Below, piece by piece: positions 67 through 63,955 of a DNA stretch of 64,000 nt. This DNA comes from Octopus bimaculoides (taxonomy: Eukaryota): NCBI RefSeq assembly GCF_001194135.2, contig NC_068988.1:50618506-50682505 (forward strand), in the 5' to 3' direction. The position numbers and the translations under genes were made by a program. The first letter of the stretch is position 1, and the number at the start of each line of letters is the position of its first letter. Below the pieces are notes generated by a model. That model made no database searches, was not told the origin of the DNA, and was given only the letters and a program-made list of their open reading frames with translations.

Positions 67-32834
<32,768 letters not shown>

Positions 32835-32947
32835 ACTGTTTACTTCTCAGCTGGCTGACCTGTTCATACATACACACACACTGGACTAGGTTGTGTGTAT
32901 GTATGTAACACTCATTTATGTGTATATATAAATATACTATATATATA

Positions 32948-33118: not shown

Positions 33119-33508
33119 CAATACATTTCAGTGCTTCAAAAACAAACTTAGTTTGTTCACATATGACGTAATATATATATATATATNNNNNNNNNNNNNN
33201 NNNNNNNNNNNNNNNNNNNNNNNNNNNNNNNNNNNNNNNNNNNNNNNNNNNNNNNNNNNNNNNNNNNNNNNNNNNNNNNNNNNNNNNNNNNNNNNNNNNN
33301 NNNNNNNNNNNNNNNNNNNNNNNNNNNNNNNNNNNNNNNNNNNNNNNNNNNNNNNNNNNNNNNNNNNNNNNNNNNNNNNNNNNNNNNNNNNNTTGAACAA
33401 TGTATAATAAAGACATGAATGAACATTGTAGATATGAATATATCTTCTATCCACATTGACCCATACCATGCTTGGGTAAGTTTATTGGTACGTACGTGTG
33501 TTTTTTTT

Positions 33509-36027: not shown

Positions 36028-37968
36028 TTACTTAGGAGAAGCACTTGCCTTGCAGTTGATTTGTTCTGAGACCATGTGTTGAAACTATAACAGTTGCTGT
36101 GTGGAAAAAAAACATAGCCATTCTAAAACACATGAAACCTGCAGTGGAACTATGTCCGTGACCAGGTTGCAGTAAACATGATGAAAATTTTAACACCAAG
36201 TAATAAATGTTTAAGTTAACAGTTTTTGTGTGTGTTTGAATGGTTAATATGTCTTCTACATTATAATTGTCATGTATATATATAATAGTGTATAAGCAAT
36301 TTATGTATTTATACACAAAAGTGGTGACCTTTGACAGGACACCTTACATGCTAGAAAGGGCAGTTAAAGCCCAAACCATGAATAAGGGCAATTTCAAAGA
36401 GAATGAAAATAAAAAATATTTGTAGCCACCGATATGAAAATTTTTCTAAATTTTCTACCCTTATTATTTTCATGGTATATATATATATACCATAGATCTA
36501 TTACTTCCATCATAGGAATAAGATTAAGATTAATGTAATATAAAGCTGAAGCAAATTAACACCAAATATACAGTGCGTGTGTTTTTATTGGCTAAACTGG
36601 CAATATGACCATCCCCAAGTACAACAATATATATATATATACCTACATATATTTATATAATGGAGATACATCATTATTTTATGTCCATTTTCCATGCAGA
36701 CATGGAATAGGAGGATTCAACAGGATTCAGTAGGTTCCAAGTTTACGTCTTGTTGCAATGTCTCATTTTTGGCTTGATTTCTATAGTTGGATGCCCTCCC
36801 TAATACCAGCTACTTTACAGAGTATAACGGGTGCATTTTTTTTTCTTGGCACTAGCATTATAGACCTTGCATTGTAGTTTGCTAAGTGAAGAGTTCCTAT
36901 GATGGAAGTAATAGATCTATTGTGAAAGGATAGTAATGGAGAGAATATCAGAGGATACAGCATCAGGATGAGAGTAAAAGAGAATCACACACGTACATAC
37001 ACATACATTCATATGCACACCAACTCCTCTCTACCAAATATTTTGGCTTTGTGTCTAAGGAATTCTTAGGGGTAACAGGTTGCCGGAATGGTTAGAGTAG
37101 CAGAAAAAAAATGTTTTGCTGCCTTAATTCTGCATTGTTACCTTCTGAGTTCAAATCCTGCCAAGTTCAAATTTTCCTGTCATCTTTTCAAAGTTCATCA
37201 AATATAGTATCATTCAAGTACTGAGGTTGACGTAATCAACTAGCCTCCTCCTTTGAAAATTGCTAGTCTTGGGCCTAAATGAGAAACAGTTATTATTGTA
37301 ATTATTAGCAAGAAGCAAGCTGCTGACAGTTGAGTATACAGCTTGGTTATGATTTCTGGTGTCGTCCCCTTTCTCTTCATTAACACATAAAATAAGTTTA
37401 AGCCTCATTCCAATTAAAAAAAGGAAAACATTTTATTTTATAAGTGTCTGATAGCAGATTTTTAACTGCAACACGACATCTTTTGGCCTCCAGCATAGTT
37501 CATCATCATCATCATTGTCATCATTGTTGTCATCATCATCATGGTTTTATTTTAGTTACTATTCATTTGTTTCTCTATTTCACTTGTCATCCATTTTTGT
37601 TTTTTTTTTGGTGGGGGAGGATGTCTGAAGGAAAAATGTATATTATGATGGTAATAATAAGTACATAATAATAATGTATAATTCTTAAAAATATAAATCT
37701 TTTTTGTTTGTTTTTCTTTTTAGTTGATAGCTTTTGTGTTATTTTAAGTTGTTCATCCTTTGATGTGTGTTAACTAATAAATATCAAAACATAGCAATGA
37801 TGCTCCATTTGCAGAAATGTCAAAATAAAATATTTCAGGTGAGAGCAGCCGAACATCACAACCCAAGAAATATACATCGAATAAATGAAGCTTACCACCA
37901 CTCACAACAACAAATATAACCATTCATACTATAGCCACCAATAATCCTACATATACTACCTGATAAAA

Positions 37969-39284: not shown

Positions 39285-40439
39285 ATGTATATATATAGGG
39301 GTTCCAGACTGGTAGTGCAAACTCTAAGTGTAGACATACCATAGTCATACATGGTTTTAAATATTTAAATAGATAGCAGGAGAGCGGCTGACAAAGGTCT
39401 TACTGAGTGACGCTTAGACACCCTCAGCCTTTTGGACAATCTTAGAGATGTGGTTTGTCCAACACAGATTGCTGTTTAAAATTGAAAAAAAAAAGGCAAC
39501 CTCAGCATAAACAACAAAAACGTTATTATCGTCATCATCCCACTTTTGTCAATAATCTTCTATTGTAAGGTATTTAAAACTATTTACATTTTTTATTATC
39601 TTACTACAATGATGCTGAGAGGATATCAAAAGAACAAAACATTAACAGCAATAGTATTTAAAAATAGCCACCATGAAAGCAACTAGTCAGAGACCTCTAC
39701 CACCACCACCATTACTACTGCTACTACTGAGAAAATTTGCAGAATTCTCATGCGATTTTCATGAAATAATCATATTTGTTTTGTTTTATAGACATACAAA
39801 TATCGTGGCATTAGGTCGCAGTTTACAATGTTGATAAGTCTCAACAACAACAATTGATACTTTATCCTTTGTAATATATCGCATCTGTGGCAAAGCCTTT
39901 GACCTCCGTATGACCGAGTCTTGCTCTTGTTTAGTCCCCGGATCAAGCCTGATTAGGTACACCTACCAATGTACAACTTTGAACATATATTTAGAAAGAA
40001 CAAAGTATATATAATAAAGGGGAGGGGAATTTCATTCGAGTATACGTTACAATTTAGTAAGCATGAAAAATCTAATTAAAAGTAATTACGCAATGAAAAA
40101 AGGGTACGATTAATACTATTTTAATTATGCCGGTGAATACGGAGGACAACTCTGGATAAATTCCGATTTTATTTGACCGACCAAGAGAAGAATAAACTTC
40201 CCGTGCCAGTCGAAGTAATGATGAGAGAATCGTTACGTAGATATAGATTATTGCTCACATGTAGCCATGAAAATGAACGCAGACGTGGTTGTGTAGTAAG
40301 AAGCTAGCTTCCCAACCACATGGTTCCGGGTTCATTCCCACTGTGGCATCTTGGGCAAGTGTCTTCTACTATAGCTTCGAGCTGACCAAAACCTTGTGAG
40401 TGGAATTGATAGACGGAAACTTAAAAGAAGTCCGTCGTG

Positions 40440-41689: not shown

Positions 41690-42780
41690 AATATTAGCTG
41701 CACAACTCAACACCTTGTTAAATGTCGACCAAGTAACACCAGAGTGGTTGACAATGGGTAGGACAGTGCTGTGCTTGAAAAACATCGAAAAAGGCAATAC
41801 GGTAGACAATTACGGGCCGATATCCTGCTTGCCACTTATGTGGAAATTATTGACTGAAATAGTCGCAGAGTCAATGTACGGACATCTGGGAAAAAAATGG
41901 AGGCCTGCCACATGAGCAGAAGGGTTGCAAGCGTAAGTGCAGAGGTACCAAGGGTCAACTCCTAGTAGACAAAACTATACTTAGAGACTGCATGAGGAGG
42001 AAAACTAACTTAGCCATGTTATGGATCGATTATCGTAAGGCGTACGATATGATCCCACATTCTTGGATTATGGAATGTATGAACCTATTTGGTATTCCAT
42101 CGAATGTTGAGCGATTGCTTGGGAAAAGTATGGCGAAGTGGAGGACAGAACTGACAGCATATAGAAGTTTAGGGACAATAGGAATCAGGAGAGGCATCTT
42201 CCAAGGGGACTGCCTGTCCCCACTGATCTTTGTACTGTGCAAGATACCACTAACATTGATTCTACGGAAAGCAAAAGCTGGGTATGTATTCAAGAGCCGC
42301 CAACAAAAAGTCAACCACTTGTTATTCATGGATGACCTCAAACTTTATGGTAATGAATTTCAAGTCAGCTCCATCGTTGATGCGGTGTATACTTTCAGTG
42401 CTGATATCAGAATGGAGTTCGGACTGAAAAAGTGAGGTGGACGGGCTAGCGATACCGCCGGGGGAAGTTATGAAGCAGATGGAAGAGACGGGCTACAAGT
42501 ACTTGGAGATACTGGAAATAATAAATTGACGGAGAAAGAAATGACAGAAAAATTTAAGGTGGAGTACTTGCGCAGACTGAGACTGATCCTTAAGTCAAAA
42601 TTAAACGGACGGAATAAGATTGAAGCTGTCCACACCTGGGTGGTTTCCCTCATTAGATATGGAGTAGGGGTGATCGCATGGACAGTAGATGAACTAAACA
42701 GCTTAGACAGAGAAACAAGGAAGTTGCTGACTAGATATGGGATACTCTACCCAAAAAGTGACATAGACAGACTGATTGGA
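41690..42780 (+). mobile_element. Non-LTR retrotransposon RT fragment, R4/Dong-like (R2 superfamily), frameshifted
   Basis: [41 protein letters not shown] motifs. Confidence 0.85.
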
Positions 42781-42950
42781 TGCGGATACAACATTAGAAC
42801 AGAAGAATAGAACATAGCATAGAGTTGCAAAACACATTTCCTAGAAGCACGTAGCGATATTTGTAATTGTTGAAAAACATCAGTATCTCCGGTATCTGAA
42901 TGTTCCTGGCGGTTCTTTGCATGATGTGGGTATAATCCCTTCCTCTAGAC

Positions 42951-43604: not shown

Positions 43605-43613
43605 TATATAAGG
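43605..43613 (+). promoter_or_regulatory. Candidate TATA box (TATATAAGG)
   Basis: Sequence match only, positioned upstream of the candidate first exon. Confidence 0.3.
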
Positions 43614-43636
43614 GTCATGTTCATTCTTATTTATAG

Positions 43637-43692
43637 ACAAAACACTCACAAGTCTTGATCTGTATACAGACGAACTCACCGTTTGCTGGAAA
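43637..43692 (+). other. Candidate non-coding first exon of the peptide gene
   Basis: No ATG; strong donor AA|GTAAGT at 43693; lies ~30 nt downstream of a TATA-like box. Confidence 0.35.
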
Positions 43693-44108
43693 GTAAGTTT
43701 TCTTCCTTTAATAATGGGAGATTCTGTTTCCTATTTGTTTTTACTTCTTGTATTTTGCTTCTGATACGTTAATATATATATAACCATAAAGATATGCTGT
43801 GTGACATTCTAAAATAAAAGGAAATAAATTTTTAGGATATACCAGTCTCCATATTCCCTATAGTTATATTTAGTGCTAATAATATACACTCCAGATAATA
43901 TTACCATCCAATGGAGCGAACACGAAATTACCCATCGGAAGAATTTACTGCTTGAGTGACAACTTCTAGTAGTCATACACTTTAAATATTAATCGATGCG
44001 GTTATCGGCAACCTGGAACATAACTGAGAGCTACCACAGTATCTGCCCGGATTATATATCCCTCTAAACTCACACACACACATGTATGTATGTAACTCTC
44101 TCTCAATC

Positions 44109-44150
<42 letters not shown>

Positions 44151-44421
44151 TGCGTATGTATATATATATATATATATATTTATAAAAGAACGTTGACCAC
44201 TAACGTGGACAATTAATGTGCTAGAAATAGATCACATCTTGTGTCTATTAAGACCTAAATTGTTCTCAACATGAAATATAGCAGCATACCAAAACGTGAG
44301 CGGGCAAGACATTTAAAATCACCTAAAAAAGCATTCTTAAACAGGTACCGGTTTCGGATTTAACAAATCTTACCGATTGTCCATTCCTCTTCAGCCTGAT
44401 TTGTAATGTAACCGCAATTTT

Positions 44422-44824
44422 NNNNNNNNNNNNNNNNNNNNNNNNNNNNNNNNNNNNNNNNNNNNNNNNNNNNNNNNNNNNNNNNNNNNNNNNNNNNNNN
44501 NNNNNNNNNNNNNNNNNNNNNNNNNNNNNNNNNNNNNNNNNNNNNNNNNNNNNNNNNNNNNNNNNNNNNNNNNNNNNNNNNNNNNNNNNNNNNNNNNNNN
44601 NNNNNNNNNNNNNNNNNNNNNNNNNNNNNNNNNNNNNNNNNNNNNNNNNNNNNNNNNNNNNNNNNNNNNNNNNNNNNNNNNNNNNNNNNNNNNNNNNNNN
44701 NNNNNNNNNNNNNNNNNNNNNNNNNNNNNNNNNNNNNNNNNNNNNNNNNNNNNNNNNNNNNNNNNNNNNNNNNNNNNNNNNNNNNNNNNNNNNNNNNNNN
44801 NNNNNNNNNNNNNNNNNNNNNNNN
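44422..44824. other. Assembly gap (largest; others at ~26190, 33187-33392, 40736-40908, 45765-45864, 47996-48095)
   Basis: Runs of N. Confidence 0.99.
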
Positions 44825-45731
44825 TATACGAGGTGGTATCAAAACGTTACCGGACTAGTAGCGCGCCAACAGATGGCAGCAAACGGTTGTTTGCGCAGAG
44901 AGAGATAGCAAAGACTTTCATGAGGCAGTGTGCCGTGTGACATTGCTGTGTTTACTTCGCTAGTTGTGAAGTTTGTGTTTTTGTGATCACGTGTGTGCTG
45001 TAGCCAGCGATTTTGTCATGGGCAGGATGTTGGAACAAAGAGCCAACGTGAAATTTTGCGTTAAACGTGGGAAGTCTGCTACGGAGACATTGAGCATGCT
45101 TCGGTAAGCTTACGGAGACGAAGCAATGAGTCGTACGCAATGTTTCGAGTGGCTAGGGCACTTCAAAAGCAGAAGAACGTCCCTGCAAGACATGCCACGA
45201 GCGTCATCCCCGGAAATGTGATATTGTGTATTGAGAATTCGTCTCCCAGGGTCAGACAGTCAATCGAGAATTCTACCGCGATGTTTTTAAGCGTTTGAAG
45301 GAGGATATTCTATGAAAGCGACCGGATTTGTGGAGCGCGAAGAATTGGATTTCTCACAATGACAATGTACCCTGTCGCCGTGCTCTCCTCATACGTGAGT
45401 TTCTCGCCAAAAACAGCATGATATCGCTTCCATACCCGCCCTATTCGCCAGATTTAGCAACTGCAGACTTCCATCTCTTCCTCACGATGAAAATGTAGCT
45501 CAAAGGTCTCCGTATTAACACCGTTGTCGAGATCCAGAGCGAATTATAGAAGGTCCTCGACTCACTGACGGAAAACGACTTCCAGTTCGGATTCCGAAAA
45601 TGGCACGAATGATGGGACTGGTGTATGGCTGCGCAAGGTAATCATTTCGAAGGAGATGATGTTAAAACTTAGGTAAATAAGTTTTTTTTTTTATTGAACA
45701 TAACTAGTACGGAAATCTTTTGATGACACCT

Positions 45732-45737
<6 letters not shown>
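44825..45737 (+). mobile_element. Internally deleted mariner transposon with TIRs and TA ends
   Basis: TIRs tatacgaggtggtatcaaaacgttaccggactagt / actagtacggaaatcttttgatgacaccttgtata; EQRANVKFCVK, PYPPYSPDLATADFHLF, GNHFEGD with stops. Confidence 0.9.
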
Positions 45738-45764
<27 letters not shown>

Positions 45765-46283
45765 NNNNNNNNNNNNNNNNNNNNNNNNNNNNNNNNNNNN
45801 NNNNNNNNNNNNNNNNNNNNNNNNNNNNNNNNNNNNNNNNNNNNNNNNNNNNNNNNNNNNNNNNGACTTGTATACCGGAATATATGGTAATTCTTCAATG
45901 AAGAATAATCTTTCCATATACCTTATGGCTGTCGCATTGTTATTGAGTAAAGCCACCCTTTTGCTCCCCATCTTGCCTTATTTCAAAGAAGTTATGCCTT
46001 CTTCCCACGGGTTTTCATGATGGCAAAGTCATACACCTGTATGGCAGGCTAAACTCATTCCTAGTTAGCCTACGGCTCTTCTTTTGAAGATGTAGCCGCA
46101 CGTGCAACTTGACTATTACGACTGACTCTGCTTAAACTACACCTTAGAGTGCCCTCAGAAACGAAGAAACTACAAAAAAATGCAGGCTGATCAAAGTCTA
46201 AAAACACTATAGATTTCAAGTTGGATTATCTTTCCCTCATGCACATTTACACGCACACATACACACACATATATATACATGTA

Positions 46284-46604
46284 TGTATGCGAGTTGGTAA
46301 CAAAAAGTTTTCCGACTAGTTCTGTAGCGTCAACAGATGACAGCACACGGTTGCGTGTAAAATGAGAGCTAATATTGATCTTCATGTCGCTGTGATAATC
46401 CAGAACGAATCGGAGAAAGTCCTCGACTCGCTTAAGGAAAACGACTTCCAGTCCGGATTCCAAAAGTGATAGGAATGCTAGGGCTGGTGTATTGCAGCAC
46501 AAGGTTACTTATTTCGAAGTAGATGATGTTAAAACTCAGGTAAATAAGTTATTTTTTTATTTATGCATTACTAGTCCTCCAACTCTTTGATATCACCTCG
46601 TATA
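46284..46604 (+). mobile_element. Short mariner deletion derivative (MITE) related to 44825-45737
   Basis: Similar TIRs (…actagtcctccaactctttgatatcacctcgtata) and the transposase 3' end. Confidence 0.8.
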
Positions 46605-46961
46605 TTCACATTCCATTCTTCATTTCTTTCTTTCTTTCTTTCTTTCTTTCCTTCCTTCCTTCCTTCCTTTCGTTCGTTCGTTCGTTCGTTTGTTTGTTTG
46701 TTTGTTTGTTTCTTTCTTTCTTCCAAATGAACTCGTTCAACCAGCTAATTCGACTTATGAAAACTATCATTATCATGAATTTCAAATGTAAATCTCTTGG
46801 CCCACATTTCAAAAATAAATAAGTAAAAATATAAACAAACAAATAAATAAATAAATAAATACACAAATAAATAAATAAATAAATAACGTAAAATTTCTCC
46901 GTGCGCAAAAGTATCAGTAATTGTTTTTCTAACTAAATTTGCCTTGTTTTATCATATCTAG

Positions 46962-46997
46962 ATGAAAAACGCGTCCAAGTACCCTGGTGGAAAAAAT
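46962..46997 (+). CDS. Microexon A (36 nt): [12 protein letters not shown]
   Basis: gccttgttttatcatatctag| ... |gtatgt; flanks homologous to the other units. Confidence 0.72.
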
Positions 46998-48095
46998 GTA
47001 TGTCTACAAAGCAAGAATCAATTAATAGATGCACAGAATTATAGGCGACAAGTGTGTTTGCGTGTGTGTTTGCGTGTGTGTTTGCATGTATGTGTTTGCC
47101 TGTTTGTTTGCATGTGTGTGTGTGTATTTGCGTGTGTGTGTGTTTGCGTGTGTGTTTGTGTGTATGTGTGTTTGCATGTGTGTTTGTGTCTGTGTGTGTG
47201 TATGTGTGTGTGTGTATGTGTGTTTGTGTGTGTTTGTATGTGTATGTTTGTGCGCGCATGCGTGTGTGAGTGCGTGTTGAAGTATGATCGTAAAAGTCGT
47301 TCTCTTTGTGTAATAGCGAATTTATCGCATCTATCCATGCATAAACTTGGAGATACACATATACATACATACATAATACATAATACATACATACATGCAT
47401 ACACATACATATATTCATATAAAGACACACACGTATACACACATGCATACATACATATATATATATATACATACATGTATATCTACATACGTACGTGCGT
47501 ACATACGTACGTACATACATGCATACATACATACACACATACATACATACATACATACATACATACATACATACATACATGATGACTGAAACTCAATTTT
47601 GCGGAATGTCATCGCTTGATTGCTCTCTTATAGCAGCATCTATGTGACTTTTCAGTCCTGCAAGGGTCAACACTTTTATGTAAAAATGTAGTAATGATGG
47701 GCACCTCTATCAGCAGGTGTTCAGAGACTTATCACTCACACTGTTACATGCCTTCATTCTATTACGGTTTTTTTTCATTGTTTATTTTGACTTGTTCGGC
47801 TATGGCTACCCATAATATACAATACGTAATAGAGATGTTAAAAAAAATTAAGCGGTGACTGTATCCGAATATTTTTAAGTGTGGGAAGACCTTGTACAGA
47901 GCCAGGCACCTTGGGCAAGCGTCTTCTACTATAGTCTCGGACCAACCAAAGCCTTATGAGCGGATTTGGTAGACGGAAACTGAAGAGAAGCCTGTNNNNN
48001 NNNNNNNNNNNNNNNNNNNNNNNNNNNNNNNNNNNNNNNNNNNNNNNNNNNNNNNNNNNNNNNNNNNNNNNNNNNNNNNNNNNNNNNNNNNNNNN

Positions 48096-48145
<50 letters not shown>

Positions 48146-48186
48146 CTATTATTATCATCATCATTATTATTATTATTGTTATTATC

Positions 48187-48269
<83 letters not shown>

Positions 48270-51200
48270 CATTATTATTGTTTTCCATCATTATTTCCAT
48301 CATTTGTAAATTGAAATGGGGAAATGAGAATTGTTTCTTAAAATTGAAATCGTGAGTGAATGAGAAATTAAAATGAAATCTGAATCGAAAAATATTGTAA
48401 TTGAAATTCGGTATGGAAGCTAACAAAGAGTTCTTTTAGATTTTAAATATTGTTTTTCGATTTGAGTTCGGAGTTTCTTACAAATAGAAGTTTTCCAGTC
48501 ACCAAATATAACTCATATCATAAAAATTATCAATTGTGTGAAGTTCAGATTTTACTCCCCGACCTTGAAAGAAAGAACAAAACCAAAAAGAGAAAAGAAA
48601 ATACACAAAACAACAAAAACAAAACAAACAAAAACAAATTCTCATTCGGAGTTAATGTTCTCAATGCATTTCATCTTATTTTATAATATACAGATAAAGA
48701 TCATGACTACGGTAGCAGGCGTTGGCATCGTAAGTATACAAATTTAGAATAATCTTTTTACCGAAAAATTGATATGCGATAACTCTATATATTGATTTGT
48801 AACATTGGTACAGAGCTACATATCATTGACAAGAGGGTATGGTATATTGAATCGATCTCAGCACTTGACTGGTACTTTGTTTTATCCACTCTTAAAGGAT
48901 GAAAGCTAAATCTGACATCTTCGGGATTTGATCTCAGAAATTATAAGGCTGCAACTTACTACTGCAAAGTATTTTGTCCGACGCTCTAACGATCTTTCTA
49001 ATCTATCATTTACTATCCTAATACTTCAATGGATGATAAACTTCATACATACATATATACAGGTATACTTGCATACATAAAAACATACATACATACATGC
49101 ATACATGCAGACTTCAGCTTTTTGTCTGAACGTATATAGTTTTCACAAAGTCATCTTACCTTCATATGAAATAGCTTAGCTGTAAAATTCTGGTAAAGTT
49201 TTATGCGAATATTTTCCCTTATTTAAGGATTAGATATATATATTTCAGTATATATGTGTATACTATCACTTCGGCACTTGACGTGTGGCACACCGCGCAT
49301 CTGTAAAGGCAAAATCAGTTTAATGGAGTACGTGAGCTTATGTGCAGCACAAGCATTTGATCATTATAAACAAATCCTCTGTATAAGGTGTTGAGCAAGA
49401 AATTACAGAACCGTCTTCCTTGGATCGAGAGATTATCATTAAATTAAGTATGTGTAAATGAGTTAAATAGCTTTTCGGTAAAGCTTCGTTCGTATTGCAT
49501 GTTTATGAAGTATGTACGATAACACACACTTAAAAGCAAGGCAAAAATAGAAGAAATCTCAAGCTATGAATAGTTATGAAATTTAATTACTGCTAAATTC
49601 TGTCGAAACTTTCAAAATCTATCAGCATATTTTAAATTTACAAATCCTCATGCTTAATGCTAAATAACGAACTAGATCAAAGACAAGAATTTACAAGCTT
49701 TGGTGAAAGAGTAAAGTATAAGTCGGCGTACTGAAAATATATAATGCTGAAGAAGCTGTCCTTCAGATATAATTAATCAGATTAATATATGGCTTCAACG
49801 AAACAGGATATTAGTTCAAGAATCTCAGAATTTATCGTTGGTATTTCATAACATTGAATGGAAAGTGTAAAGATTTCTGAAGATGTACCAACAACTTTCA
49901 ATCTTATCAATAAATAAATAAATGAATAAATAAATAAAGCTAAAATTGTTCACTCGACTGTCTTCCAGTACGTTTTCTTTATGATTTTGATTAGCTGTCC
50001 CGAAGTGTTTTCTTTATATAATTGTACCTACTGTATTATCATTACATTGTATCATCTCAGTTAACTGAGGGAAGAAACAGGGAATATGGTAGAGTATATA
50101 TATTTCGCAGATATATTAACAAAATAATACAAGAAAAAAGACAGGAAATAAACACAAGAAAGTAGTGGCCGGTCTCAAAATACCATTAATTATCTCGTTT
50201 ACTATCCTGTGATTCTGCACATATATCACTTAACATATTACTGAATGCACTATGGAGCTCCCGTAAGCTCGTATAATCAAGTCAAATCTGTCTTTTCTGT
50301 AATTCTAAATGTACTATTTTACATCTACAAGATAATTTAACATTATGAGGACCGAGTATTCTATTAATAATCTTGATAGCACGCCTCCACATCTACATTA
50401 TTTCGTTGGTTGTGATAAAAAAATAGTTCTGTATTGATTATTTGACATCATCAAAAATATTCTAAACGGAATATTTTCTGGTTATTTATTTATTCTAAAT
50501 ATTAAAAAAAATTCTTATTTATTTATTTATTTATTTATTATTTATTTATTTATTTTTCTTCATTTATGGTCCGTTTGCATATTTAAATTTTGTGTTTTGA
50601 CTTAAATCAAATTCACAAGAAAATGTGAAATCGAATTCAATTGAAAAAGTTATAAAGATTGTTGCTGAAATTAGGAATGGAACGGAAAAATCAATAATTT
50701 CAGTTGTTTAAATATCTGTTCTCGATTAATGCTTATATTTTAAATTCTATATATTCATGTCTTCAATTAACTCTTACCAGACAAAATTTGGTTTATAAAA
50801 ATATTAGCTTGATGAAACTTGTATTTTAAACTGAAAATAATATCCTTCTAAAGATATTTCCGCTTTGTTTTCTAATATATAGGTAGACATCATGATGTTG
50901 ATTGGCATGGGAATCGTAAGTAAAACAAACCTAGAATTATATTTTAATCGAGAAAAGTCAATGTGTAACTTTCTATATCAGTTAGTTGGCACTCCGTCGC
51001 TTACGACGTCGAGGGTTCCAGTTGATCCGATCAACGGAACAGCCTACTCGTGAAATTAACGTGGAAGTGGCTGAGCACTCCACAGACACGTGTACCCTTA
51101 ACGTAGTTCTCGGGGATATTCAGCGTGACACAGTGTGACAAGGCTGACCCTTTGAATTACGGGCACAACAGAAACAGGAAGTAAGAGTGACAGAAAGTTG

Positions 51201-52878
51201 TGGTGAAAGAGTACAGCAGGGTTCGCCACCATCCCCTGCCGGAGCCTCGTGGAGCTTTAGGTGTTTTCGCTCAATAAACACTCACAACGCCCGGTCTGGG
51301 AATCGAAACCGCGATCCTATGACCGCGAGTCCGCTGCCCTAACCACTGGGCCATTGCGCCTCCACACTTTCTATATTAACTTCTGACATTTGTACAGGAC
51401 TAGATATTTTCGATGAGAGAATAAAGTACATTGAATCGAACTCAGTACTAGGCTAGCACTTTAACTTATTCCCTCCGGAAGAAAGAAAGCTAACATTGAC
51501 ATAGAAGAATTTCAACTTAGGACAAAGTAGGTATAGCTACTTATATTCTATAAAGGATTTTATATGACGTTCTAATGATTCAGCAATAACGCCTTCTTAA
51601 TAGCTATTTGTATTAAGGTACAATAAGATCCCTCAATGGGTGATAAACTTAATATATACAGATATTGTTAAGTGTAAATGTTATTTTTAAGTTTGAACGC
51701 ATATAATTGCTTCCATGCTATAACATGAAATAGCAGAGCTGAAAAAAAGAAACGGTTATGACTCTATCTAAATATTGTTGCGTAAGTATCTTAATATTAC
51801 ACACACTTTAACATAAATGTATAAATAAGTTCATTAATCCTTTAGCAATAAATCTTTTATGTTATTTAAGTATGTCCGGTACCTTTAATAACCCGAAACA
51901 CACAAAAAAAAAAACAAGTTGAGAATAATTATAAAATTAAATTTGATTAAAATTTGTTGATACTTCTAAAGCCATCATCTTACATCTTAAATTGTATATA
52001 CGTTGACTATCAATAGTTAAATTCATTATAACCAACCGCTGATATAATTAAAGTACCCCTTATATTTGGCGTAATCCAATATATTCTGAACTGTTAACTT
52101 TTTTCTGTTTATTTATTTTGAGCAATCATTTGTTCATAATTTTTTACGTCCGTTTGAAATTCGAAATTCAGAATATGAATGTATCGTTTTAAAAGGAAGT
52201 CACTAGAGAATATGAAATCGAATTCAGTCGAAAACTTTAAAAAATAAAATTGAAATTCAAAATGGAATTAATAGAATAAATAATTTCAGTTGATTAAATA
52301 TTGACTTTTGTTTTCTGTTCGCATTTTAAGTTCTGTATATTCATTTCTTACAAATGAACTAAAAATTCGGTATGTGAAAATATTTACTAAATGTATTTCA
52401 TATTTTTAGTCCTATAATCCAGAATAAACTAAAAATAATGTCCTGATAGGGAATCCTTTTCTTCTAAATATATTTTGCTTTGTTTTATAATATACAGATA
52501 GACATCATGGCAGACACTGGCAAGGACATCGTAAGTACATCTAGAATAACATTTTTACTACAGGATCTAATATGTGATATTTCTATGTATTGATATCTGA
52601 CACTTTTAAAAAACTAATTTTTGTATAAGGGAGGGTATAGTATATTGAATCAACGTCCGTACTTGGCTGGAACTATATTTTATCTGTTCGGGAAAGTTGA
52701 GAACCAGAAATGACGTCAGCGCAATTTGATCGCAAAGCAGAAAAGCTGATATATAATTACTGGACAATATTTTGTCCAACATTCTAACGACCTTTTTTAT
52801 TCTTCGCCTCTATAGAATTATTTATTAAGCTGCAACAAAATATTTCAATAGGTGATAAATTTTACACACATACACGCA

Positions 52879-52940
<62 letters not shown>

Positions 52941-55900
52941 GAATGCAGATTTCAGCACAAGTGAACGCATATAATTATCGCTTTTATAAAAGCAGCATAT
53001 GAAACTTTTGAGCTACAAAATACGGTTATGATTATAGTTTTGCGTATATAAATATTATATATTACTTTAGCATAGATGTATAAATAAACCAAATAAATTT
53101 CGATAAGGAACTATTCGTTCTGCATGTTTATGAAGTGTGTACGATGCAATACAGCCAATAAACTACAAATATGCAGTGTACTCTCTCTGCAGTTTCTATT
53201 AATGCGATAACTGCCTTCGTTGCTATGGATCACCTAGTTGCGTACCACATTCTACTAGATGAACTTCTATCAATATTTTCTTCTGCTGGCAACCTTCTGC
53301 AGTTCTCTTCCTAAGCATATTTTCCGGCACTTGTAGATGCACACATGTTCAAGCTGAACATCACCTGCATTGATCTCACCATTCTTGCAGAGTCCCACCC
53401 CCAGACACATAGATAAAATATTATGAACTCAAAAACTGCGGGATGATTGAAGTCATTTCACTTGCGTTTTTGACAGTTTTTGGGGATAAGTTAAGCACCC
53501 TACGCTACTTTTTCTTTCCCATTTAATACAACGCTTTTGTGCTCGTATAAGAAGAAATTAATTCTATTACTAACATTTGCATGACAGAGTGGCATAGCTG
53601 CAGAAAGCTGATTACATATTCAACATTTCTTCCTTATGCCATTAACTTTGTCTTCAAATTCCACTGATTTCTTGTTTGCCTTTCATCTTCTGGGTTTGAT
53701 AACATTAGAACCGATCTAGCACTAGATCGATTAAATCAAACGTAAAATTGCCCCTAAATCTCTCACCTTTTTCCAAAATTTATTTCTAACATATGCACAA
53801 AGCCTCACATTTTTGGGGGAAATGTATTGCGTATCAATTAGCTACAATACTTGGTTTGTTTTTATTTCATAGAATCTGTATGAAGGAAAAGCAAAGCCAT
53901 CTTTGGTGGGTTTCGAAATACTAAAAGTTATTTTGTCCACTGCTCTTTGATTCTCGTTATTCGCAACACATGTCAATCTACTAACGAGACTCTTAAAATG
54001 CATAGACCACTTAGTAGGTTACCATGCTCTCGATAATACAATTGAGCGTTAGTGGGTCCATACAATTAAATTAGATCTTTCTACTGCTTTTACTGCCCTA
54101 TTTTACATTGACATTTGTCGGTGACTTTACTGTGTGAGAATAGAGAATCCTGTTAATATTCATTCCAAGATGTCCTACATAATTTCGGCGGCTGAGACGT
54201 TGAATGTCATGCACTATTTCGTAATCATAGTTTTTCTACCTCGATTACTTGATGAAATTCAAATGATCTCAAACAAAGTATTGTATTTCCAACAGTTTTA
54301 AAAGAAATTTTTGTATTTTATTTTCGCCTGTTTGAAATTTGTTTCAAAATCATGAATGAATGGCAAATAGAATACATTTGAAAAATTAAAAGATTAATTG
54401 AATTTTGGAATGGAATCGAAAAAATAATTTTAATTGTTTAAGTACTGACTTCCAGATTTCGTACCTTAAGTTCAATATTTAAAATTCTTTCAAACCGACT
54501 CTTCTCACAAAATTTCATCTGCAAAAATATCAGTTGACCAAATCTCATAATTTAGTTCTATCTCCCAGAATAAAATGAAAATAATATACCGAAAATAATT
54601 ATTTTCTTCTTAATATATTTCACTTTGTTTTATAATATACAGATGGACACTATAGGAAACCTTGGAATAAATATCGTAAGTATACCAATCTAGAATTACA
54701 TTTTATCTGCGAAGAGTTAGTTAATGTGTGGTTACATTAAATTAATCTCTAAAATTGGTATAAATTCAATCTTTTTTTGACGGGAGAGAAAAGTTTATTG
54801 AATCGACTTCAGTACTTGAATGGCACAGTTGTCTTATCCATTCCGGAAGAACGAAGTTCAGCATTGACATCGGTGAAATTTGATCTCAAGGAGTAACTAT
54901 CTACTGTAATCATATTAGGTTATTTAACATAATCCAAAATATTTTAAATAGAATATTTCCTGTTCAGTTTTTAGTACTTAAAAAAAAAAACATTTTGTAC
55001 GTTTGAAATTTGAAAAGCGGAATATGAGTGTGTTATCTTAGACTCAAAATCACGTGTAAATTTTAACTCGAATTAAATCGAAAAATTGAAACAAATTGTG
55101 ATTGAAATTCAGAACGGAATCGAGGAAAAAAATTCAGCTATTTACATATAAGACCTTCAGCTTGTGTTCGTATTTTGAATGTAGTAATTTAATTTCTTTC
55201 AAATTGACACTTATCACCGAAATTTGAATCTATGAATATTTCCGCTTCACGAATTTCATATTTTAATCCTACCCTCGAGAATAAACTGAAAATAATGATC
55301 TAATTGGAAATTATTGTTCTTGTTTTATACCATATAGGAAGAGTTTACTTGAGAAGATATTCGCGTAGACAATGTAAGTATGAAAATCTATAATCTTATT
55401 TTAACTGGGAAATTTTAATACTTGACTGGTACTTTATTTTATCTACCCTGGTACGATCTAAGGAAAAGTCAGCCGTAGCCAAATGTGAACATTCGGCAAC
55501 GTAGATGGATGTAACTTAGTGCCGGAAGTAGTTTTTACCCATCTCTCTGCGACAATCCCTTTTCTAAATATTAGAAATTGATTTCATACTTATTATAGTT
55601 AATGATATAATTGACGTATGTCTGGTTCACTTCGCACAACTTTCTAGTTTAAGAAATCTACTGGCTGTCTTTATAGACAATCATACCTGGAACAGGCCAG
55701 TGGACAAATACAGCTTATCTAGAATTTGCTTTCCTGATGTAACACAATTATATACCATAAATATCAAAATCATGTGATTATATTATAATCTGTTCGACCG
55801 AAAAAATAAAACAGCGCATTTCATTTCTCCGACACTGTAAACTAGAGATAAACTTTTGAATGTTTAATACACCTATTTACAATTATTCAAAAATATATAA

Positions 55901-56729
55901 TTGAATATATTAATTGTTGTAATCTACTTATTCATACATAAATAATTTCTAGAACAAATACTAAATTACTTAGTTTATCGAAGTAAAATAATTTTGTAAG
56001 TAAAAGTTTAAACATTTATAAATAAATTAGCTATTTAAAAAAAACCAAAACAGAAACACGTACTTGGAAATAAATGTTTTTGATCACAATATGTCATTAA
56101 GTAAAATTATTCATATACTATTATTATCATTATTATTATCATTAATTAATAAATAAAATGAATGTATTTATAAAGTATAATTTAGTATAATGAAGATAGC
56201 TTATTTGTAATCTATAATTAATAATTAACTACGAATATAATGATGTATTTTACAGTAAATACAAATATTTTTGCTGGAACTAATACGAAATACGAATTAA
56301 TCCACTAAAAAGTCTTTTTCCAAATGCCCACCTTACAAAATTTAAAATAACAAACCTTAAGTCTCAATAAAAAAACTTTAAAAGGAATCAGTATAAAAAT
56401 ATGAAATTAAAAGATAAAATATCAAAAAACTTAGTGCGGATCAGACATAGTAACAATTAAGGAAACAAATGTTTTAGTCTAATAATTTAATGTCTTAAAA
56501 TGACCTTGAGCAAGTGAACTAGTGGTTAGAACAACAAGATAGTGAAATAAAGTCCCAGAAAGACCACTGATTAAAATGTGGTGTGAGCAGAACATCCATA
56601 GTAAGGGAAATAAACTGAAAAAAAAAAAAAAAAAAACGCTTATACATTGATACTGATCATTACAGTGACATAAAATGTTATTTTGTTTCTATCTTTGCAG
56701 TCAGAAGACGTTACACCCGCCATGGTTAA
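46962..56729 (+). CDS. Unannotated microexon gene encoding a His/Arg/Trp/Tyr-rich cationic peptide (~78 aa visible, 5'-partial)
   Basis: Seven 33/36-nt exons with strong splice sites. Only the phase-1 frame is open across all of them, ending in TAA at 56727-56729. Confidence 0.8.
47050..47580. repeat. Compound (GT)n/(TACA)n microsatellite
   Basis: Direct. Confidence 0.96.
48096..48285. repeat. (TA)n, (AAT)n/(ATT)n microsatellites
   Basis: Direct. Confidence 0.96.
48694..48729 (+). CDS. Microexon B (36 nt): (Y)[11 protein letters not shown]
   Basis: ttattttataatatacag| ... |gtaagt. Confidence 0.82.
50883..50915 (+). CDS. Microexon C (33 nt): (R)[10 protein letters not shown]
   Basis: ctttgttttctaatatatag| ... 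|gtaagt. Confidence 0.82.
50979..51365 (-). mobile_element. Young tRNA-derived SINE with 11-bp TSD
   Basis: Minus-strand head gtggaggcgcaatggcccagtgg…ggtttcgattcc (A/B boxes); TSD actttctatat. Confidence 0.88.
52498..52530 (+). CDS. Microexon D (33 nt): (H)[10 protein letters not shown]
   Basis: ctttgttttataatatacag| ... |gtaagt. Confidence 0.84.
54643..54675 (+). CDS. Microexon E (33 nt): (H)[10 protein letters not shown]
   Basis: ctttgttttataatatacag| ... |gtaagt. Confidence 0.84.
55338..55373 (+). CDS. Microexon F (36 nt): (R)[11 protein letters not shown]
   Basis: cttgttttataccatatag| ... |gtaagt. Confidence 0.8.
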
Positions 56730-56733
56730 AATT
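56701..56733 (+). CDS. Microexon G (33 nt) with stop: (F)RRRYTRHG*
   Basis: ttttgtttctatctttgcag| ... |gtgagt; flanks not obviously homologous to units A-F. Confidence 0.72.
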
Positions 56734-58127: not shown

Positions 58128-59060
58128 TGTGTGTGTATATATACTACGGATTTCTACACAGTTTCTGTTTACCTAATTCACTCACAAGACATTAGTCGAC
58201 TCGAAACTACATGCTCAATGTGCCACCTCGTGGGAATGAACCTGAAACCACATAGTTGCAAAGCGAGCTTCATTTATAAATTAAATAGATTAGCGGTGTC
58301 GTTATAGATAAGTTACTCTTAACACACTTAATGTACCATGCATTAAAATTAGCATGAACTTACCTGTCGTTTTACATACGAATGGAGTGTTTGAGTTTCT
58401 TAATATATTAATTTTGTGAAGAAGACGCGTAGCCTGGTGGGTCGGATGTTCACAGTTGATATCATTAGGTTGATACAAATGGAAGACTATGAAGAGTAAA
58501 AGTTATGACGTTTCGGACAGGGACCCTTTTAGGATATTAGAAGAAAGTCCAGGAGAAACAGAGAAAAGATGGAAGAGATGAAAGGAGATAAAAAGAAAAT
58601 AAAACCAGGAGAAAACGCGCGGAGGTTAGGTTCACATGTTCGACCTCTAAAACCCCTACACCACCCGCACATACACGCACATATGGTGCATATGTCTTTG
58701 GTTTTGTTCAAAAAGCTAAAACATGCTTTTGTATGAAACCAATGTTGCCCCTTTTGTATATTCAAATGAATCTTGTCTGTCGATGTATTGATATGAATAT
58801 TAGAACATCTTCCGAAAGACAGCAAGCTGGCAGAATCGTTACCGCACCGGGGGAAAAAATGCTCACCGGTATTTCGTCCGTTTTTACGTTCTGAGTTCAA
58901 ATATCACCGAGGTCGACTTTGCCTTTTATCCTTTTGAAGTCGTTAAAATAAGTACCAGTTGAACACTGGGGTCAATGTAATCGACTTGCTATTTTCCCCA
59001 AAATTACTGGTCATGTTCCATAATTTGAAACAAGTGAAATTTTCTTGCTTCTAACTTCAG

Positions 59061-59092
59061 ACAGAGACGGCTATCATTGAGAACAACATGAT
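59061..59092 (+). other. Candidate non-coding 3'UTR microexon (32 nt) of the peptide gene
   Basis: tttcttgcttctaacttcag| ... |gtaagt; length not divisible by 3. Confidence 0.45.
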
Positions 59093-59946: not shown

Positions 59947-60332
59947 TAGTAGTTGGCACTCCGTCGCTTACGACGTCGAGGGTTCCAATTGATCTGACCA
60001 ATGGAACAACCTGCTCGTGAAATTAACGTGCAAGTGGCTGAGCACTCCACAGATACGTGTACCCTTAACGTATTTCTCGGGGATATTCAGCGTGACACAG
60101 TGTGACAAGGCTGACCCTTTGAATTACAGGCACAACAGAAACAGGAAGTAAGAGTGAGAGAAAGTTGTGGTGGAAGAGTACAGCAGGGTTCACCACCATC
60201 CCCTGCCGGAGCCTCGTGAAGCTTTAGGTGTTTTCGCTCAATAAACACTCACAACGCCCGGTCTGGGAATCGAAACCGTGATCCTATGACCGCGTGTCCG
60301 CTGCCCTAACCACTGGGCCATTGCGCCTCCAC
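59947..60332 (-). mobile_element. Near-identical copy of the 50979 SINE
   Basis: Direct alignment along the whole length; an older copy lies at ~11890-12190. Confidence 0.88.
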
Positions 60333-61080: not shown

Positions 61081-61386
61081 GGTGTTTTAAATTTTTCTCG
61101 GTGTTTGTAATGATTGTATATATGCCGGAAACTGTTAAGATTGGAACTTGGAGTTTTAAAAGACAAATCCTTTCGATTTCAGTTGTTTTGTTTCTTTGTG
61201 TAGGTGGTTTGTGAGTGACCTATGAATATGCGAAGTGCATTATTTTTGTTCCTTTTCTAGTTTATTATGGTTTGTAGAAGAGGAATTGGGACCGAAGTAT
61301 GTTAGATTTAATGCATAGTTTGCATACTAATGTTTCTTTACATATCTGTTACACTGTAGGTTTGTGGATTTGGTAGACGCAATATC

Positions 61387-61422
<36 letters not shown>

Positions 61423-62579
61423 TGTGTGTGTGCGTGTGCGTGTGCGTGTGCGTGTGTGCGTGTGCGTGTGCGTGTGTGCGTGTGCGCGCGCGCGCGCGCG
61501 TGTATGTGTGTGTTCATGAGAGGACGTGCATAATTCTTTTTCGAGCCTTGGTATTATCTTTATATGTTCTAATTTGAAGGAGTCCATATTAAAATAATAT
61601 TTTAATGATTTTCTTTTCGTTTTTCTAAAGTTTTAGGGGACAGCAGTCGAAGAAAGTGCACAATCTCGGAATTTATAGCTAAGCAGTTCATTATGAATAA
61701 TGGTGTTCATCCTTTAAGGATTATTTTTTGCTTAACCGTTCACTAATGGGTATCACTAAGAACATCTGTCAACAGTGGATGAGACACTATTTTCCGCTAT
61801 TTTTCCAGACATTTTCTAAAAAACTACATTTACTCACTGACTATCTGAGTCCGAAATGTTCTTACAAATGTGACTTAATAAATAATTTTCATAACTGAAA
61901 ATAAAAACAACTATGTCTCGTTTTCTTGTAATATGCTTTCATTTGGTGACCTAGTTCCGTGGCATCTAATTATCTAGCTTTAAATATGTACTCCTTTACT
62001 TCAATCAACTCCCACCACTGCTCTGGTCTATTGCACTATGATATAAATTGAGGACAGCAAGAGAACACAGTTCTGGTCTATTGCACAATGTTTCTTTTTG
62101 TTTCTTGGTGGTTAGCTCATTGTACCTAGATAGAGCTGTGTAGACTAAAACAGTGATAGTAAACACTGATCCAAGGAAAAGTGAAGCAGACGAATTTTAT
62201 CTTAGGCAAAGTAAAATTTCGTTGAAGATATGAACTATCTATGGTGGATTTCGGGTTGCGTCAGTGATATTCAAATGTTTACTTACGCGTCAGAAAACTG
62301 CCCAATCGAGCAAGACCGAATGAAAGAAGCAAAAGAAACAGTAATAACACTGTATATTTTTAGTCAAGCAATGTAACCTTAGGAAACTAGCGTTTCAGCG
62401 TTGACAATAACTAAAATTATGAAATAATTTTCATGCAGTCAGGAAATAAAATTCAATGTTTCTAGCAGAATATTTTGTATGAGAGAGGAGAAATTATTGG
62501 TTTGGAAGGATAAATGCACTAGAAATAGTAAGAAAGAGAGGGGAGATAAAAAGAAGATAACAAGTGTTACTGTAGACTA

Positions 62580-63325
62580 GCATGTGAGTTTATGTGGAAG
62601 TGTGTGTACGTGCGTGTATATGTGTGCGTGTGTGTGTGTGCATTGTGTATGTGTTGTGCACGGAGAATTGTGTGCGTTTGTGTGTGCGTGTGTGCGTGTG
62701 CTCGTGTGTGGGTGTGCACGTGCGTGTGTGTGTGTATGCGAGCGGGAGAGAGGGGTGTGTTGGTATAGCCAAAGGGTGTGGGTTTCATGTGTGCGTGCAG
62801 ATGAGCATGTGTGCGTGCGTGCGTGTGTGTGTGTGCGCGCGGGGGGGTGTTGGGTGTGTACGTGTGTGCGTGTGTATGCACGAGCGAATGTGTGTGTGGT
62901 GTGTGTGTGGTTGCGCGTTTATCTGCGCGTGGGTGTGTGTGGTGTATGGTATGGTGTGTGTGTGGTGCGAGGGGTGTGTGCTCGTCGGTGTGTGTGTGTG
63001 AGTGTGGTGTGTGATAGGGTGTGAGGGGCGGGATGTCAAGAGTGTGTGTGTACATTGGTGTTGTTATTAGTGTATATGTGCTTGTGGGTGTACATATGGG
63101 TATGTGTGTGTGAATATGTAAATGTGCGTATAAGTGTGTATATGTGTGGGGCCCTATGTTGGTGTGTATGCATATGTGCATAAAACTGTGTGTGTGGAGG
63201 CCTCTGTGTGGGTGTGTGTGTTGCCGTGCATATTTATGTGTAGCAGTCTGTATGGAGGTGTGTGTGTGTGTATATGAGTATGAGTGCATGCGTATGAAAG
63301 TGTGTGTATGTGTGTGTGTGTATAT
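62580..63325. repeat. Degenerate (GT)n low-complexity tract
   Basis: Direct; source of spurious His/Thr and Cys/Val ORFs. Confidence 0.92.
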
Positions 63326-63955
63326 GAAAAAAATTCAATTTAAAATAAAGTTTCAAAATAAAACATGAGAAATCAAAGAAATATATAAAATAAAAAAATC
63401 AAAATCAAAAATAAAATAATTGAAAAAGATTATATAAATAAATCAGTAACAGAAAAAAAAAGTAATCAAATAAAAAATAGAACAGATTAAAATGTTTTTT
63501 TTAATATGGTGTGTGGAGAAAGTCATTGAACGGAAGGGGTTGTGTTGAGTCCGAAAGGAGTCGAAGTACGTAAACTGAAAATATAGCACTGTTCCTGGGG
63601 GAGTCTAGCGTTGGTGGATCCAAGGTGTTGGGCAAGGCAAAGACTGAGGTCTGATGTGGAGTGGTCTAGCAGGTGTTCGGTGAACTGGTCGGTTAAAGTT
63701 TATTGGAAAGATTGCACCTGATGCAGTAAATAAGGCTTGAGGAAGTGGAGGATAAGGAGTTCCTAATGGAGAGGGTGTGGTGGTTAGATCCAGTGTGGGT
63801 GGTGGTGTTGGTGATGAAAGGACCCGTCCCCGTCCTTCCGACTGTTTTGGAATACCTGATTCGTGGATTTCTCTCTACCATTGGAATACGTCACCTTTTT
63901 ATTCATTCCGAGTACATCATTTCTGCACCTTCGATTGTGAATCATACATTTTCAC

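Follow-up and report, generated by a model that had tools for sequence, protein, structure and literature searches.

Does a row of very short exon candidates, scattered through DNA that otherwise lacks open reading frames (ORFs) of any length, make up a protein-coding gene, and if so in which frame is it read? The question arises from a 64,000-nt stretch of the Octopus bimaculoides genome (NCBI RefSeq assembly GCF_001194135.2, contig NC_068988.1, forward-strand positions 50,618,506 to 50,682,505), referred to below as the window and numbered from its first base, in which seven such exons, labelled A to G, lie between 46,962 and 56,733. Our leading interpretation, held with about even confidence and built on sequence patterns, is that together they represent a genuine lineage-specific microexon gene coding for protein, or its 3′ portion, read in the frame in which all introns are in phase 1 (the phase-1 frame). 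Such a gene would probably be unannotated and fast-evolving. The frame that starts at the first base of exon A, in which the introns would be in phase 0, is called frame 0.

A previous sequence-only reading had placed seven exons of 33 or 36 nt here, each bordered by AG and GT, and had spliced them in the phase-1 frame. All positions, lengths and borders were confirmed, and splicing the 240 nt of exons A–G reproduced a Cys-free product of 77 residues (18 Arg, 13 His, 7 Tyr, 6 Lys and 6 Trp) that ends at a TAA. Each exon is preceded by YAG, exon G being entered at the first strong acceptor 3′ of exon F, and the exons are spaced 0.7–2.4 kb apart with no ORF longer than 12 codons. A scan of the 64-kb window for AG-N33/36-GT[AG][AT]GT plus a pyrimidine tract gives 10 forward-strand matches, seven of these being exons A–G within 9.8 kb, and one on the reverse strand. 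Three features had been overlooked, namely tandem paralogy that takes in ~550 nt of flanking intron, an ORF that opens with an ATG in frame 0, and an eighth exon, H, beyond exon G. What is reported below on exon and unit anatomy, on conservation, on period-3 structure and on the statistics of the frames is directly observed.

Alignment indicates that exons A–F are old tandem duplicates of a unit of ~0.7–2.2 kb. In units B–F, conserved intron covers ~330 nt on the 5′ side of the exon and ~200 nt on its 3′ side, with a variable middle that contains insertions, and the aligned flanks are 0.60–0.68 identical, which is the neutral level. In exon A, what remains alignable is the acceptor together with the initial 30 nt of the intron that follows. 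The acceptor 18-mer TTGTTTTATAATATACAG, allowing up to 3 mismatches, is found six times in the window, exclusively at exons A–F (0.47 expected), the copy at exon A having three mismatches. Exon G shows at most weak kinship to the A–F units in its flanks, and its intron starts with GTGAGTATAC, similar to the family. Every unit also carries an antisense fragment of a dispersed short interspersed nuclear element (SINE), which matches other SINE copies at 37143–37225 and 58889–58959 on the opposite strand. Since all units carry it, the SINE insertion preceded the duplications, and the fragment provides a neutral yardstick. A transposon origin of the unit itself was considered and rejected, as the upstream part of the unit is confined to the array within the window and the embedded SINE fragment alone is dispersed. 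Two further SINE-like copies of ~380 nt, 95% identical to each other, lie at 50983–51362 and 59950–60330; the first sits in the intron after exon C, indicating a young insertion in an old unit. This element, on the reverse strand, has a tRNA-like head by eye, and ARAGORN calls no tRNA in it.

Against this neutral background, the splice signals stand out. The acceptor region (−20 to −1) is 0.83 identical across units and 0.90–1.00 identical among C, D and E, making it the most conserved of 702 windows of 20 columns, and the region from −40 to −21, which contains a TTCTAA-type branch-site-like motif, reaches 0.76. The donor GTAAGT is 100% identical in B–F and is the sole perfect hexamer window among 730. 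We read this pattern as the signature of selection for splicing; it is our chief reason to hold that the exons are in use or once were. It also bears on whether the array is a decaying or dead relic, that is, a former exon array now reduced to a pseudogene, or a coincidental repeat, with no current protein in either case. Such decay would suit the missing 5′ end, the transposon fragments and gaps that fill the region upstream of exon A, the replacement of the flanks of exon A by microsatellites, and exon H, where a TGA takes the place of the TGG of the repeats and coding-like codons continue beyond the stop. However, six units keep a branch-site-like motif, a pyrimidine tract, an AG and a GTAAGT or GTATGT donor despite ~35–40% neutral divergence, and the frame is intact over 75 codons. 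Pure chance is excluded by the counts of the 18-mer, of the exon form and of conserved windows. We therefore regard a relic or coincidental repeat as distinctly unlikely.

Selection for splicing alone would also be expected if the exons were spliced yet non-coding, as parts of a long non-coding RNA or as untranslated exons, and the period-3 structure of the exons counts against this explanation. Exons A–G fall into two length classes, both multiples of 3, against a mere 15% of flank indels with such a length, and all seven exons are phase 1–1 in the favoured frame. Counting from the first base of each exon, that base and every third one after it is a purine in 91% of cases in A–E (12/12 in exon B) and in 88% in A–G. 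This periodicity was matched by 0 of 20,000 shuffles, with shifted controls peaking at 0.70 and random local segments at 0.74, although the shared ancestry of A–F inflates it along with several of the other statistics, since a single ancestral 33-mer would show such a pattern by chance in ~5–10% of cases. Relative to intron composition, the purine class is significant at p=1e-10 to 1e-12, the second position class is C-rich (p=5e-4) and the third is at background (p=0.8). The same phase is kept in exon G (9/11 purines) and perfectly in exon H (11/11), which is the only further AG..GT candidate of at least 30 nt with a perfect phase-specific purine pattern on either strand of the whole window. 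Exon GC is 0.42, against 0.31 in the introns.

Non-coding exons would account for several other traits, namely a favoured frame that lacks a start codon, the lack of a homologue in the protein collection and in Pfam, the stops in G and H that are followed by further donors, and exon interiors that diverge neutrally (0.48–0.67 identical among C, D and E, against 0.60–0.68 in the flanks). They would not account for seven lengths that are multiples of 3, for a purine periodicity that is phase-locked across exons and into G and H, for the avoidance of stops in a stop-prone frame, for the invariant TGG of A–E or for the raised exon GC. We consider a spliced but untranslated array unlikely.

The choice of frame turns on the purine-rich position, which falls at codon position 1 when read in frame 0 and at codon position 2 in the phase-1 frame. 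Every stop codon has T as its first base, which makes the openness of frame 0 near-automatic when position 1 is a purine, and simulated neutral evolution leaves some frame open in 8–47% of runs, so that the openness of frame 0 and its ATG carry little weight. With a purine at codon position 2, by comparison, the phase-1 frame is the stop-prone one. Ahead of its terminal stop it contains 13 T-purine-N codons (seven TAY and six TGG), none of which is a stop, an outcome with a probability of ~0.002–0.006 when estimated from the observed third-position composition, and simulations put the chance that the frame remains open across six copies at P=0.012–0.07. At third positions its composition (A.30, C.18, G.14, T.38) agrees with that of MED23, a gene in the same window, and its synonymous-codon score of +0.04 to +0.10 bits per codon is close to the +0.03 to +0.05 of held-out in-frame MED23 exons. 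Pooled pN/pS among C, D and E is 0.65 in the phase-1 frame and 0.94 and 1.1 in the others, values from tiny counts that give a hint only. The basic, aromatic composition carries on into exons F and G, and the TGG that the sequence-only reading had seen in each of exons A–E, and that we find there as well, is a full Trp codon in the phase-1 frame. Its choice of frame thus holds up: the phase-1 frame is the best of the three by stop avoidance, by openness through exon F, by codon usage and by lowest pN/pS, the stop of frame 0 in exon F is indeed present as a TGA, and the third frame is full of stops. From these sequence statistics, the phase-1 frame is clearly favoured over frame 0.

Frame 0 nonetheless offers a coherent product from the same exons. 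Starting at the ATG of exon A, it would encode a micropeptide of 61 residues, rich in Ile, Met, Gly and Asp and partly hydrophobic, that ends in exon F or, if F is skipped, runs through G and H. The ATG would be the first AUG of the mRNA if a candidate with a TATA motif and a donor at 43605–43692 is exon 1, and G and H are open in this frame too. The purine at codon position 1 fits the purine-any-pyrimidine (RNY) trend of coding sequence, with a position-specific log-likelihood ratio of 13 versus 4 bits, and the replacements look conservative (V/I/M, with constant Gly and Ile). Yet the openness is a by-product of the purine at position 1, the frame is closed by the TGA in exon F, and codon usage is aberrant: the synonymous-codon score is −0.48 bits per codon, below all MED23 off-frames (−0.24 to +0.10), and GC at third codon positions is 0.50, against 0.37 in MED23. 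The invariant T of TGG would fall on the wobble base although codon positions 1 and 2 vary. An exon start of ATG, ATA or GTA is a family trait, exon E also beginning with ATG, so that the start codon is weak evidence, and pN/pS is ~0.94. A frame-0 micropeptide is accordingly given little credence here.

Several observations weigh against a phase-1 coding gene, beginning with the inflation of the periodicity statistics noted above. Exons A–F are paralogues and do not represent seven independent events; their interiors are no more alike than the neutral flanks, as non-coding exons would also be; and frame 0 is open from its ATG through A–E. None of the exons contains an ATG in the phase-1 frame, and no phase-1 ATG exon with a signal-peptide-like core was found in the assembled sequence between 32.9 and 46.96 kb, with four assembly gaps upstream. 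Splicing the weak first-exon candidate at 43605–43692, the sole promoter-like one, to exon A gives the phase-1 frame an in-frame TGA and no ATG. At the other end, the stops of exons G and H lie near the last junctions and ahead of further donors, an unusual 3′ structure. Finally, no orthologue or homologue was found in the protein collection, in Pfam, in PDB or in a motif scan of metagenomes.

The candidates for a 5′ exon are all weak. The combination of TATATAAGG and a donor, which defines the candidate at 43605–43692, is expected to be common by chance in such AT-rich DNA; spliced to exon A, this candidate makes the frame-0 ATG the first AUG. The weak phase-1 candidate nearer to exon A is not convincing as a signal peptide. 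Phase-1 symmetric cassettes are typical of extracellular proteins, which lends weak support to secretion. Secretion of the product is otherwise unsupported, and the secreted antimicrobial peptide proposed in the sequence-only reading finds no backing in the region between MED23 and exon A, where no phase-1 signal-peptide exon was found, or in the exons, which have no in-frame ATG.

Beyond exon G, exon H may be either an alternative last coding exon or a 3′ untranslated exon. Its phase-1 reading is YRDGYH-TGA-EQHD, and the family style continues past the stop. This TGA, at 59078–59080, stands roughly where the repeats carry TGG, and the codons GAA, CAA, CAT and GAT after it keep to the family pattern. 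It may be a true terminator, the result of a recent nonsense mutation or, more speculatively, a site of A-to-I recoding, by which editing could turn the exon H UGA into a Trp codon such as the UGG of the repeats.

The assembly gap in intron A–B is unlikely to alter this picture. On the left it is bordered by a SINE copy with 83% identity to that at 40345–40430, which runs on as ...CGTCGTGTATATG(TA)n, and on the right by sequence that starts with (TA)n. The gap most likely hides only a SINE tail and microsatellite, with no effect on the frame, a hidden extra exon being formally possible. The gaps at 33187–33392, 45765–45864 and 47996–48095, and also that at 26190–26199, adjoin (TA)n or (CA)n microsatellites, which suggests that the breaks reflect repeat collapse, not missing unique sequence.

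Homology searches were constrained by what the databases contain. The phase-1 peptide had no match in the protein collection, which is without close relatives of this genome, and the frame-0 peptide, submitted as a chimeric query with a MED23 exon as positive control, had none in the same collection. The control exon itself matched only two Logan fragments, at 60–81% identity. With the control hitting only the MED23 of a distant relative, both peptide nulls are therefore uninformative. The two fragments (SRR34434955 and SRR34434943) are genomic contigs of that distant relative, with MED23 exons at 74% nucleotide identity and introns ~10x shorter, and are the only related sequences in the protein collection. 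No significant match to the peptide came from Pfam or PDB, and the combined acceptor and donor motif had 0 matches in a metagenome scan. A literature search found no description of a cephalopod microexon gene of this kind, and nothing relevant on tandem exon duplication or on His/Arg-rich octopus proteins.

Tandem units of ~0.7–2.2 kb with short exons and conserved intronic segments also recall host genes for intronic small RNAs, such as tandem snoRNA or miRNA clusters, in which a short non-coding exon accompanies an RNA-bearing intron. Rfam matches, however, are all sub-threshold and lie in microsatellites, the conserved stretch of intron lacks a conserved fold (−1.1 kcal/mol, the covariation term being positive) and is in part an old SINE fragment, and no hairpin recurs per unit, the strongest folds being in the inserted SINE and in (ATT)n. 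A small-RNA host is thus extremely unlikely. The sub-threshold 'miRNA' and 'snoRNA' matches (mir-297, mir-3149, mir-466 and others) at 47040–47580, 44066–44192 and 49038–49113 are artefacts in TG/CA/TA microsatellites. Two other candidates were rejected: mutually exclusive exons of a larger known gene, as there are no recognisable constitutive flanking exons and the ORF ends in G or H, and a 3′ extension of MED23, which ends with a TAA at ~32835, 14 kb upstream.

Under the phase-1 coding interpretation, the gene would have been built by repeated tandem duplication of a unit carrying one 33- or 36-nt phase-1/phase-1 cassette exon. Splicing would be driven by strong intronic signals, comprising a TTCTAA-type branch site, a T-rich tract with YAG, and GTAAGTA, which may compensate for the tiny exons and for the missing G at the last exon base. 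Exons A–G would then yield a polypeptide of at least 77 residues. The predicted peptide has a pI of 11.6, a charge of ~+20 at pH 7, a grand average of hydropathicity of −2.3, and 17% His, 23% Arg, 8% Lys, 8% Trp, 8% Gly and 0% Ala, and on this composition it is almost certainly a disordered polycation. Selection would target splicing, frame and composition while the exact sequence drifts at a roughly neutral rate; the purine at codon position 2 would restrict residues to polar, charged or aromatic-polar types, and each repeat would keep one Trp. As all cassettes are symmetric, exon skipping could yield length variants. We infer transcription and translation of the array, and a polycation function on polyanionic or metal targets.

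Among known systems, the architecture most resembles the micro-exon genes (MEGs) of schistosomes, in which short symmetric exons with lengths in multiples of 3 usually follow a signal peptide and give exon-skipping variants (PMC4015677). In both, nearly all coding sequence lies in very short symmetric exons, here 33 or 36 nt long and uniformly phase 1–1 in A–G, the cassettes can be skipped in frame, and the products, here a predicted one, are small, low-complexity, fast-evolving orphans. The octopus array belongs to another phylum and has no sequence relationship to MEGs, neither the protein collection nor Pfam nor PDB having returned a match. Most MEGs carry a signal-peptide exon at the 5′ end, of which none was found here in the interval searched, and unlike theirs, the microexons here are tandem paralogues along with their intron flanks.

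A different likeness is offered by tropoelastin, the PEVK region of titin and the His-rich Tx microexons of avian troponin T, in which tandem-duplicated short symmetric exons of the same phase can be alternatively spliced. The run of such exons with one repeat per exon is common to these genes and the array. The known cases, however, are parts of large conserved genes, whereas here there is no similarity to such a gene, no conserved flanking exons, and an ORF that ends within the array.

Likeness to other basic or His-rich proteins is confined to composition. Histatins (HTN1 and HTN3, in the SCPP locus) share a cationic make-up rich in His, Arg, Lys and Tyr, and short patches such as RHHG; the octopus peptide also has Arg at 23% and Trp at 8%. 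Introns of SCPP genes are in phase 0 throughout, in contrast to the phase-1 introns of the His-rich frame here, and no signal peptide was found in the octopus array. A BLASTP comparison with histatin 3 aligned a patch of 9 residues only, with E=0.089. Histatins arose from STATH in anthropoid primates (PMC12457735), and this origin excludes homology with them; "histatin-like" can only mean an analogy. In sum, selected exons and the phase-1 frame are the parts of the sequence-only reading that are supported, and neither kinship with histatins or SCPP genes nor the label of a secreted antimicrobial is. Squid His-rich beak proteins are His-rich as well, and are cephalopod-specific, clustered and structural. 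Their Gly/Ala/His repeats differ from the octopus peptide, which has no GHG periodicity and lacks Ala, and they are reported absent from Octopus bimaculoides (PMC9068888). Arg/Trp-rich antimicrobial and cell-penetrating peptides resemble it in high positive charge and aromatic residues, a likeness of composition only. As for protamine-like basic sperm proteins, only the last ~20–21 residues are protamine-like, or like a nuclear localization signal, in composition, and the Arg content, with Arg plus Lys at 31%, is far below protamine level.

A broader proposal, tentative and unlikely as a whole, is that of a taxon-restricted gene, born and expanded as a single 33-nt cassette exon duplicated in tandem, that would encode a modular His/Arg/Trp/Tyr polycation whose length and charge are tuned by exon skipping. 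It might represent a mollusc counterpart of the flatworm MEG strategy and might serve in host defence, metal binding, or as a coacervate or adhesive material. If expressed, the array would be a clear case of a gene that escapes standard annotation, having no long ORF, no homologue and distant exons, and would carry the micro-exon gene architecture outside the flatworms. Its tandem exon duplications would cleanly document how a gene grows, with introns and their embedded SINE fragment as an internal neutral clock against which selection shows on splicing, frame and composition and not on sequence. Its product, an unusual His/Arg/Trp/Tyr polycation, would be a candidate for antimicrobial, metal-binding, nucleic-acid-binding or phase-separating roles. 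If the array is not expressed, it cautions how coding-like a decayed exon array can look.

Coordinates of the microexon array and neighbouring features, in positions of the window (a slash marks the exon–intron border).
Feature	Position	Strand	Description
Microexon A	46962–46997	+	36 nt; AG acceptor, GTATGT donor; TTCTAAC ~30 nt upstream; ATG at first base in frame 0; phase-1 frame gives a partial codon plus 11 residues
Microexon B	48694–48729	+	36 nt; GTAAGT donor; 12 residues
Microexon C	50883–50915	+	33 nt; GTAAGT donor; 11 residues
Microexon D	52498–52530	+	33 nt; GTAAGT donor; 11 residues
Microexon E	54643–54675	+	33 nt; GTAAGT donor; 11 residues; begins with ATG
Microexon F	55338–55373	+	36 nt; GTAAGT donor; 12 residues; phase-1 frame alone open
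Exon G	56701–56733	+	33 nt; GTGAGT donor; FRRRYTRHG, then stop; TAA 4 nt before donor
Exon H (newly found)	59061–59092	+	32 nt; AG acceptor, GTAAGT donor
Weak non-coding first-exon candidate	43605–43692	+	TATATAAGG, then ~80 nt on ...GGAAA/GTAAGT
Weak phase-1 first coding exon candidate	46727–46787	+	MNSFNQLIRLMKTIIIMNFK/GTAAAT; 174 nt upstream of exon A
Assembly gap	47996–48095		Intron A–B, within (TA)n tail of SINE
Paralogous units B–F, tandem array	48300–55480	+	Flanks align at 60–68% identity
Antisense fragment of dispersed SINE	48826–48940	−	Repeat families D15/D16; in every unit, at +95 to +210
Further copies of the unit SINE fragment	~51407–51502, 52624–52708, 54777–54870, 55420–55467		
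MED23 exon pieces	~3763–3921, 4506–4700, 7002–7208, 28357–28533, 30334–30378	+	
MED23 last exon	~32640–32835	+	Ends ...IQEGFHF, then TAA

The window as a whole is AT-rich, with GC of 0.27–0.42, many microsatellites and SINE copies, and six assembly gaps, one of them at 44422–44824. MED23 occupies the forward strand from the window start (1–32835), its 3′ two-thirds being present (positions 540–1272 of the Pfam Med23 profile), and the microexon array follows ~14 kb downstream on the same strand. Between the two lie a reverse-transcriptase (RVT_1) fragment and a stop-riddled remnant of a Mos1/mariner-like transposase with a weak HTH_48 match, transposon fragments being found at 41700–42810, 44825–45760 and 46398–46605. 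The 3′ end of the Mos1/mariner-like remnant has a second partial copy, 79–81% identical, 867 nt further on and just upstream of exon A. At the far end of the window, from 61380 to 63330, a long tract of low-complexity, GT-rich sequence, its GC skew strongly positive (0.44 over the final 2 kb), produces spurious long ORFs on both strands.

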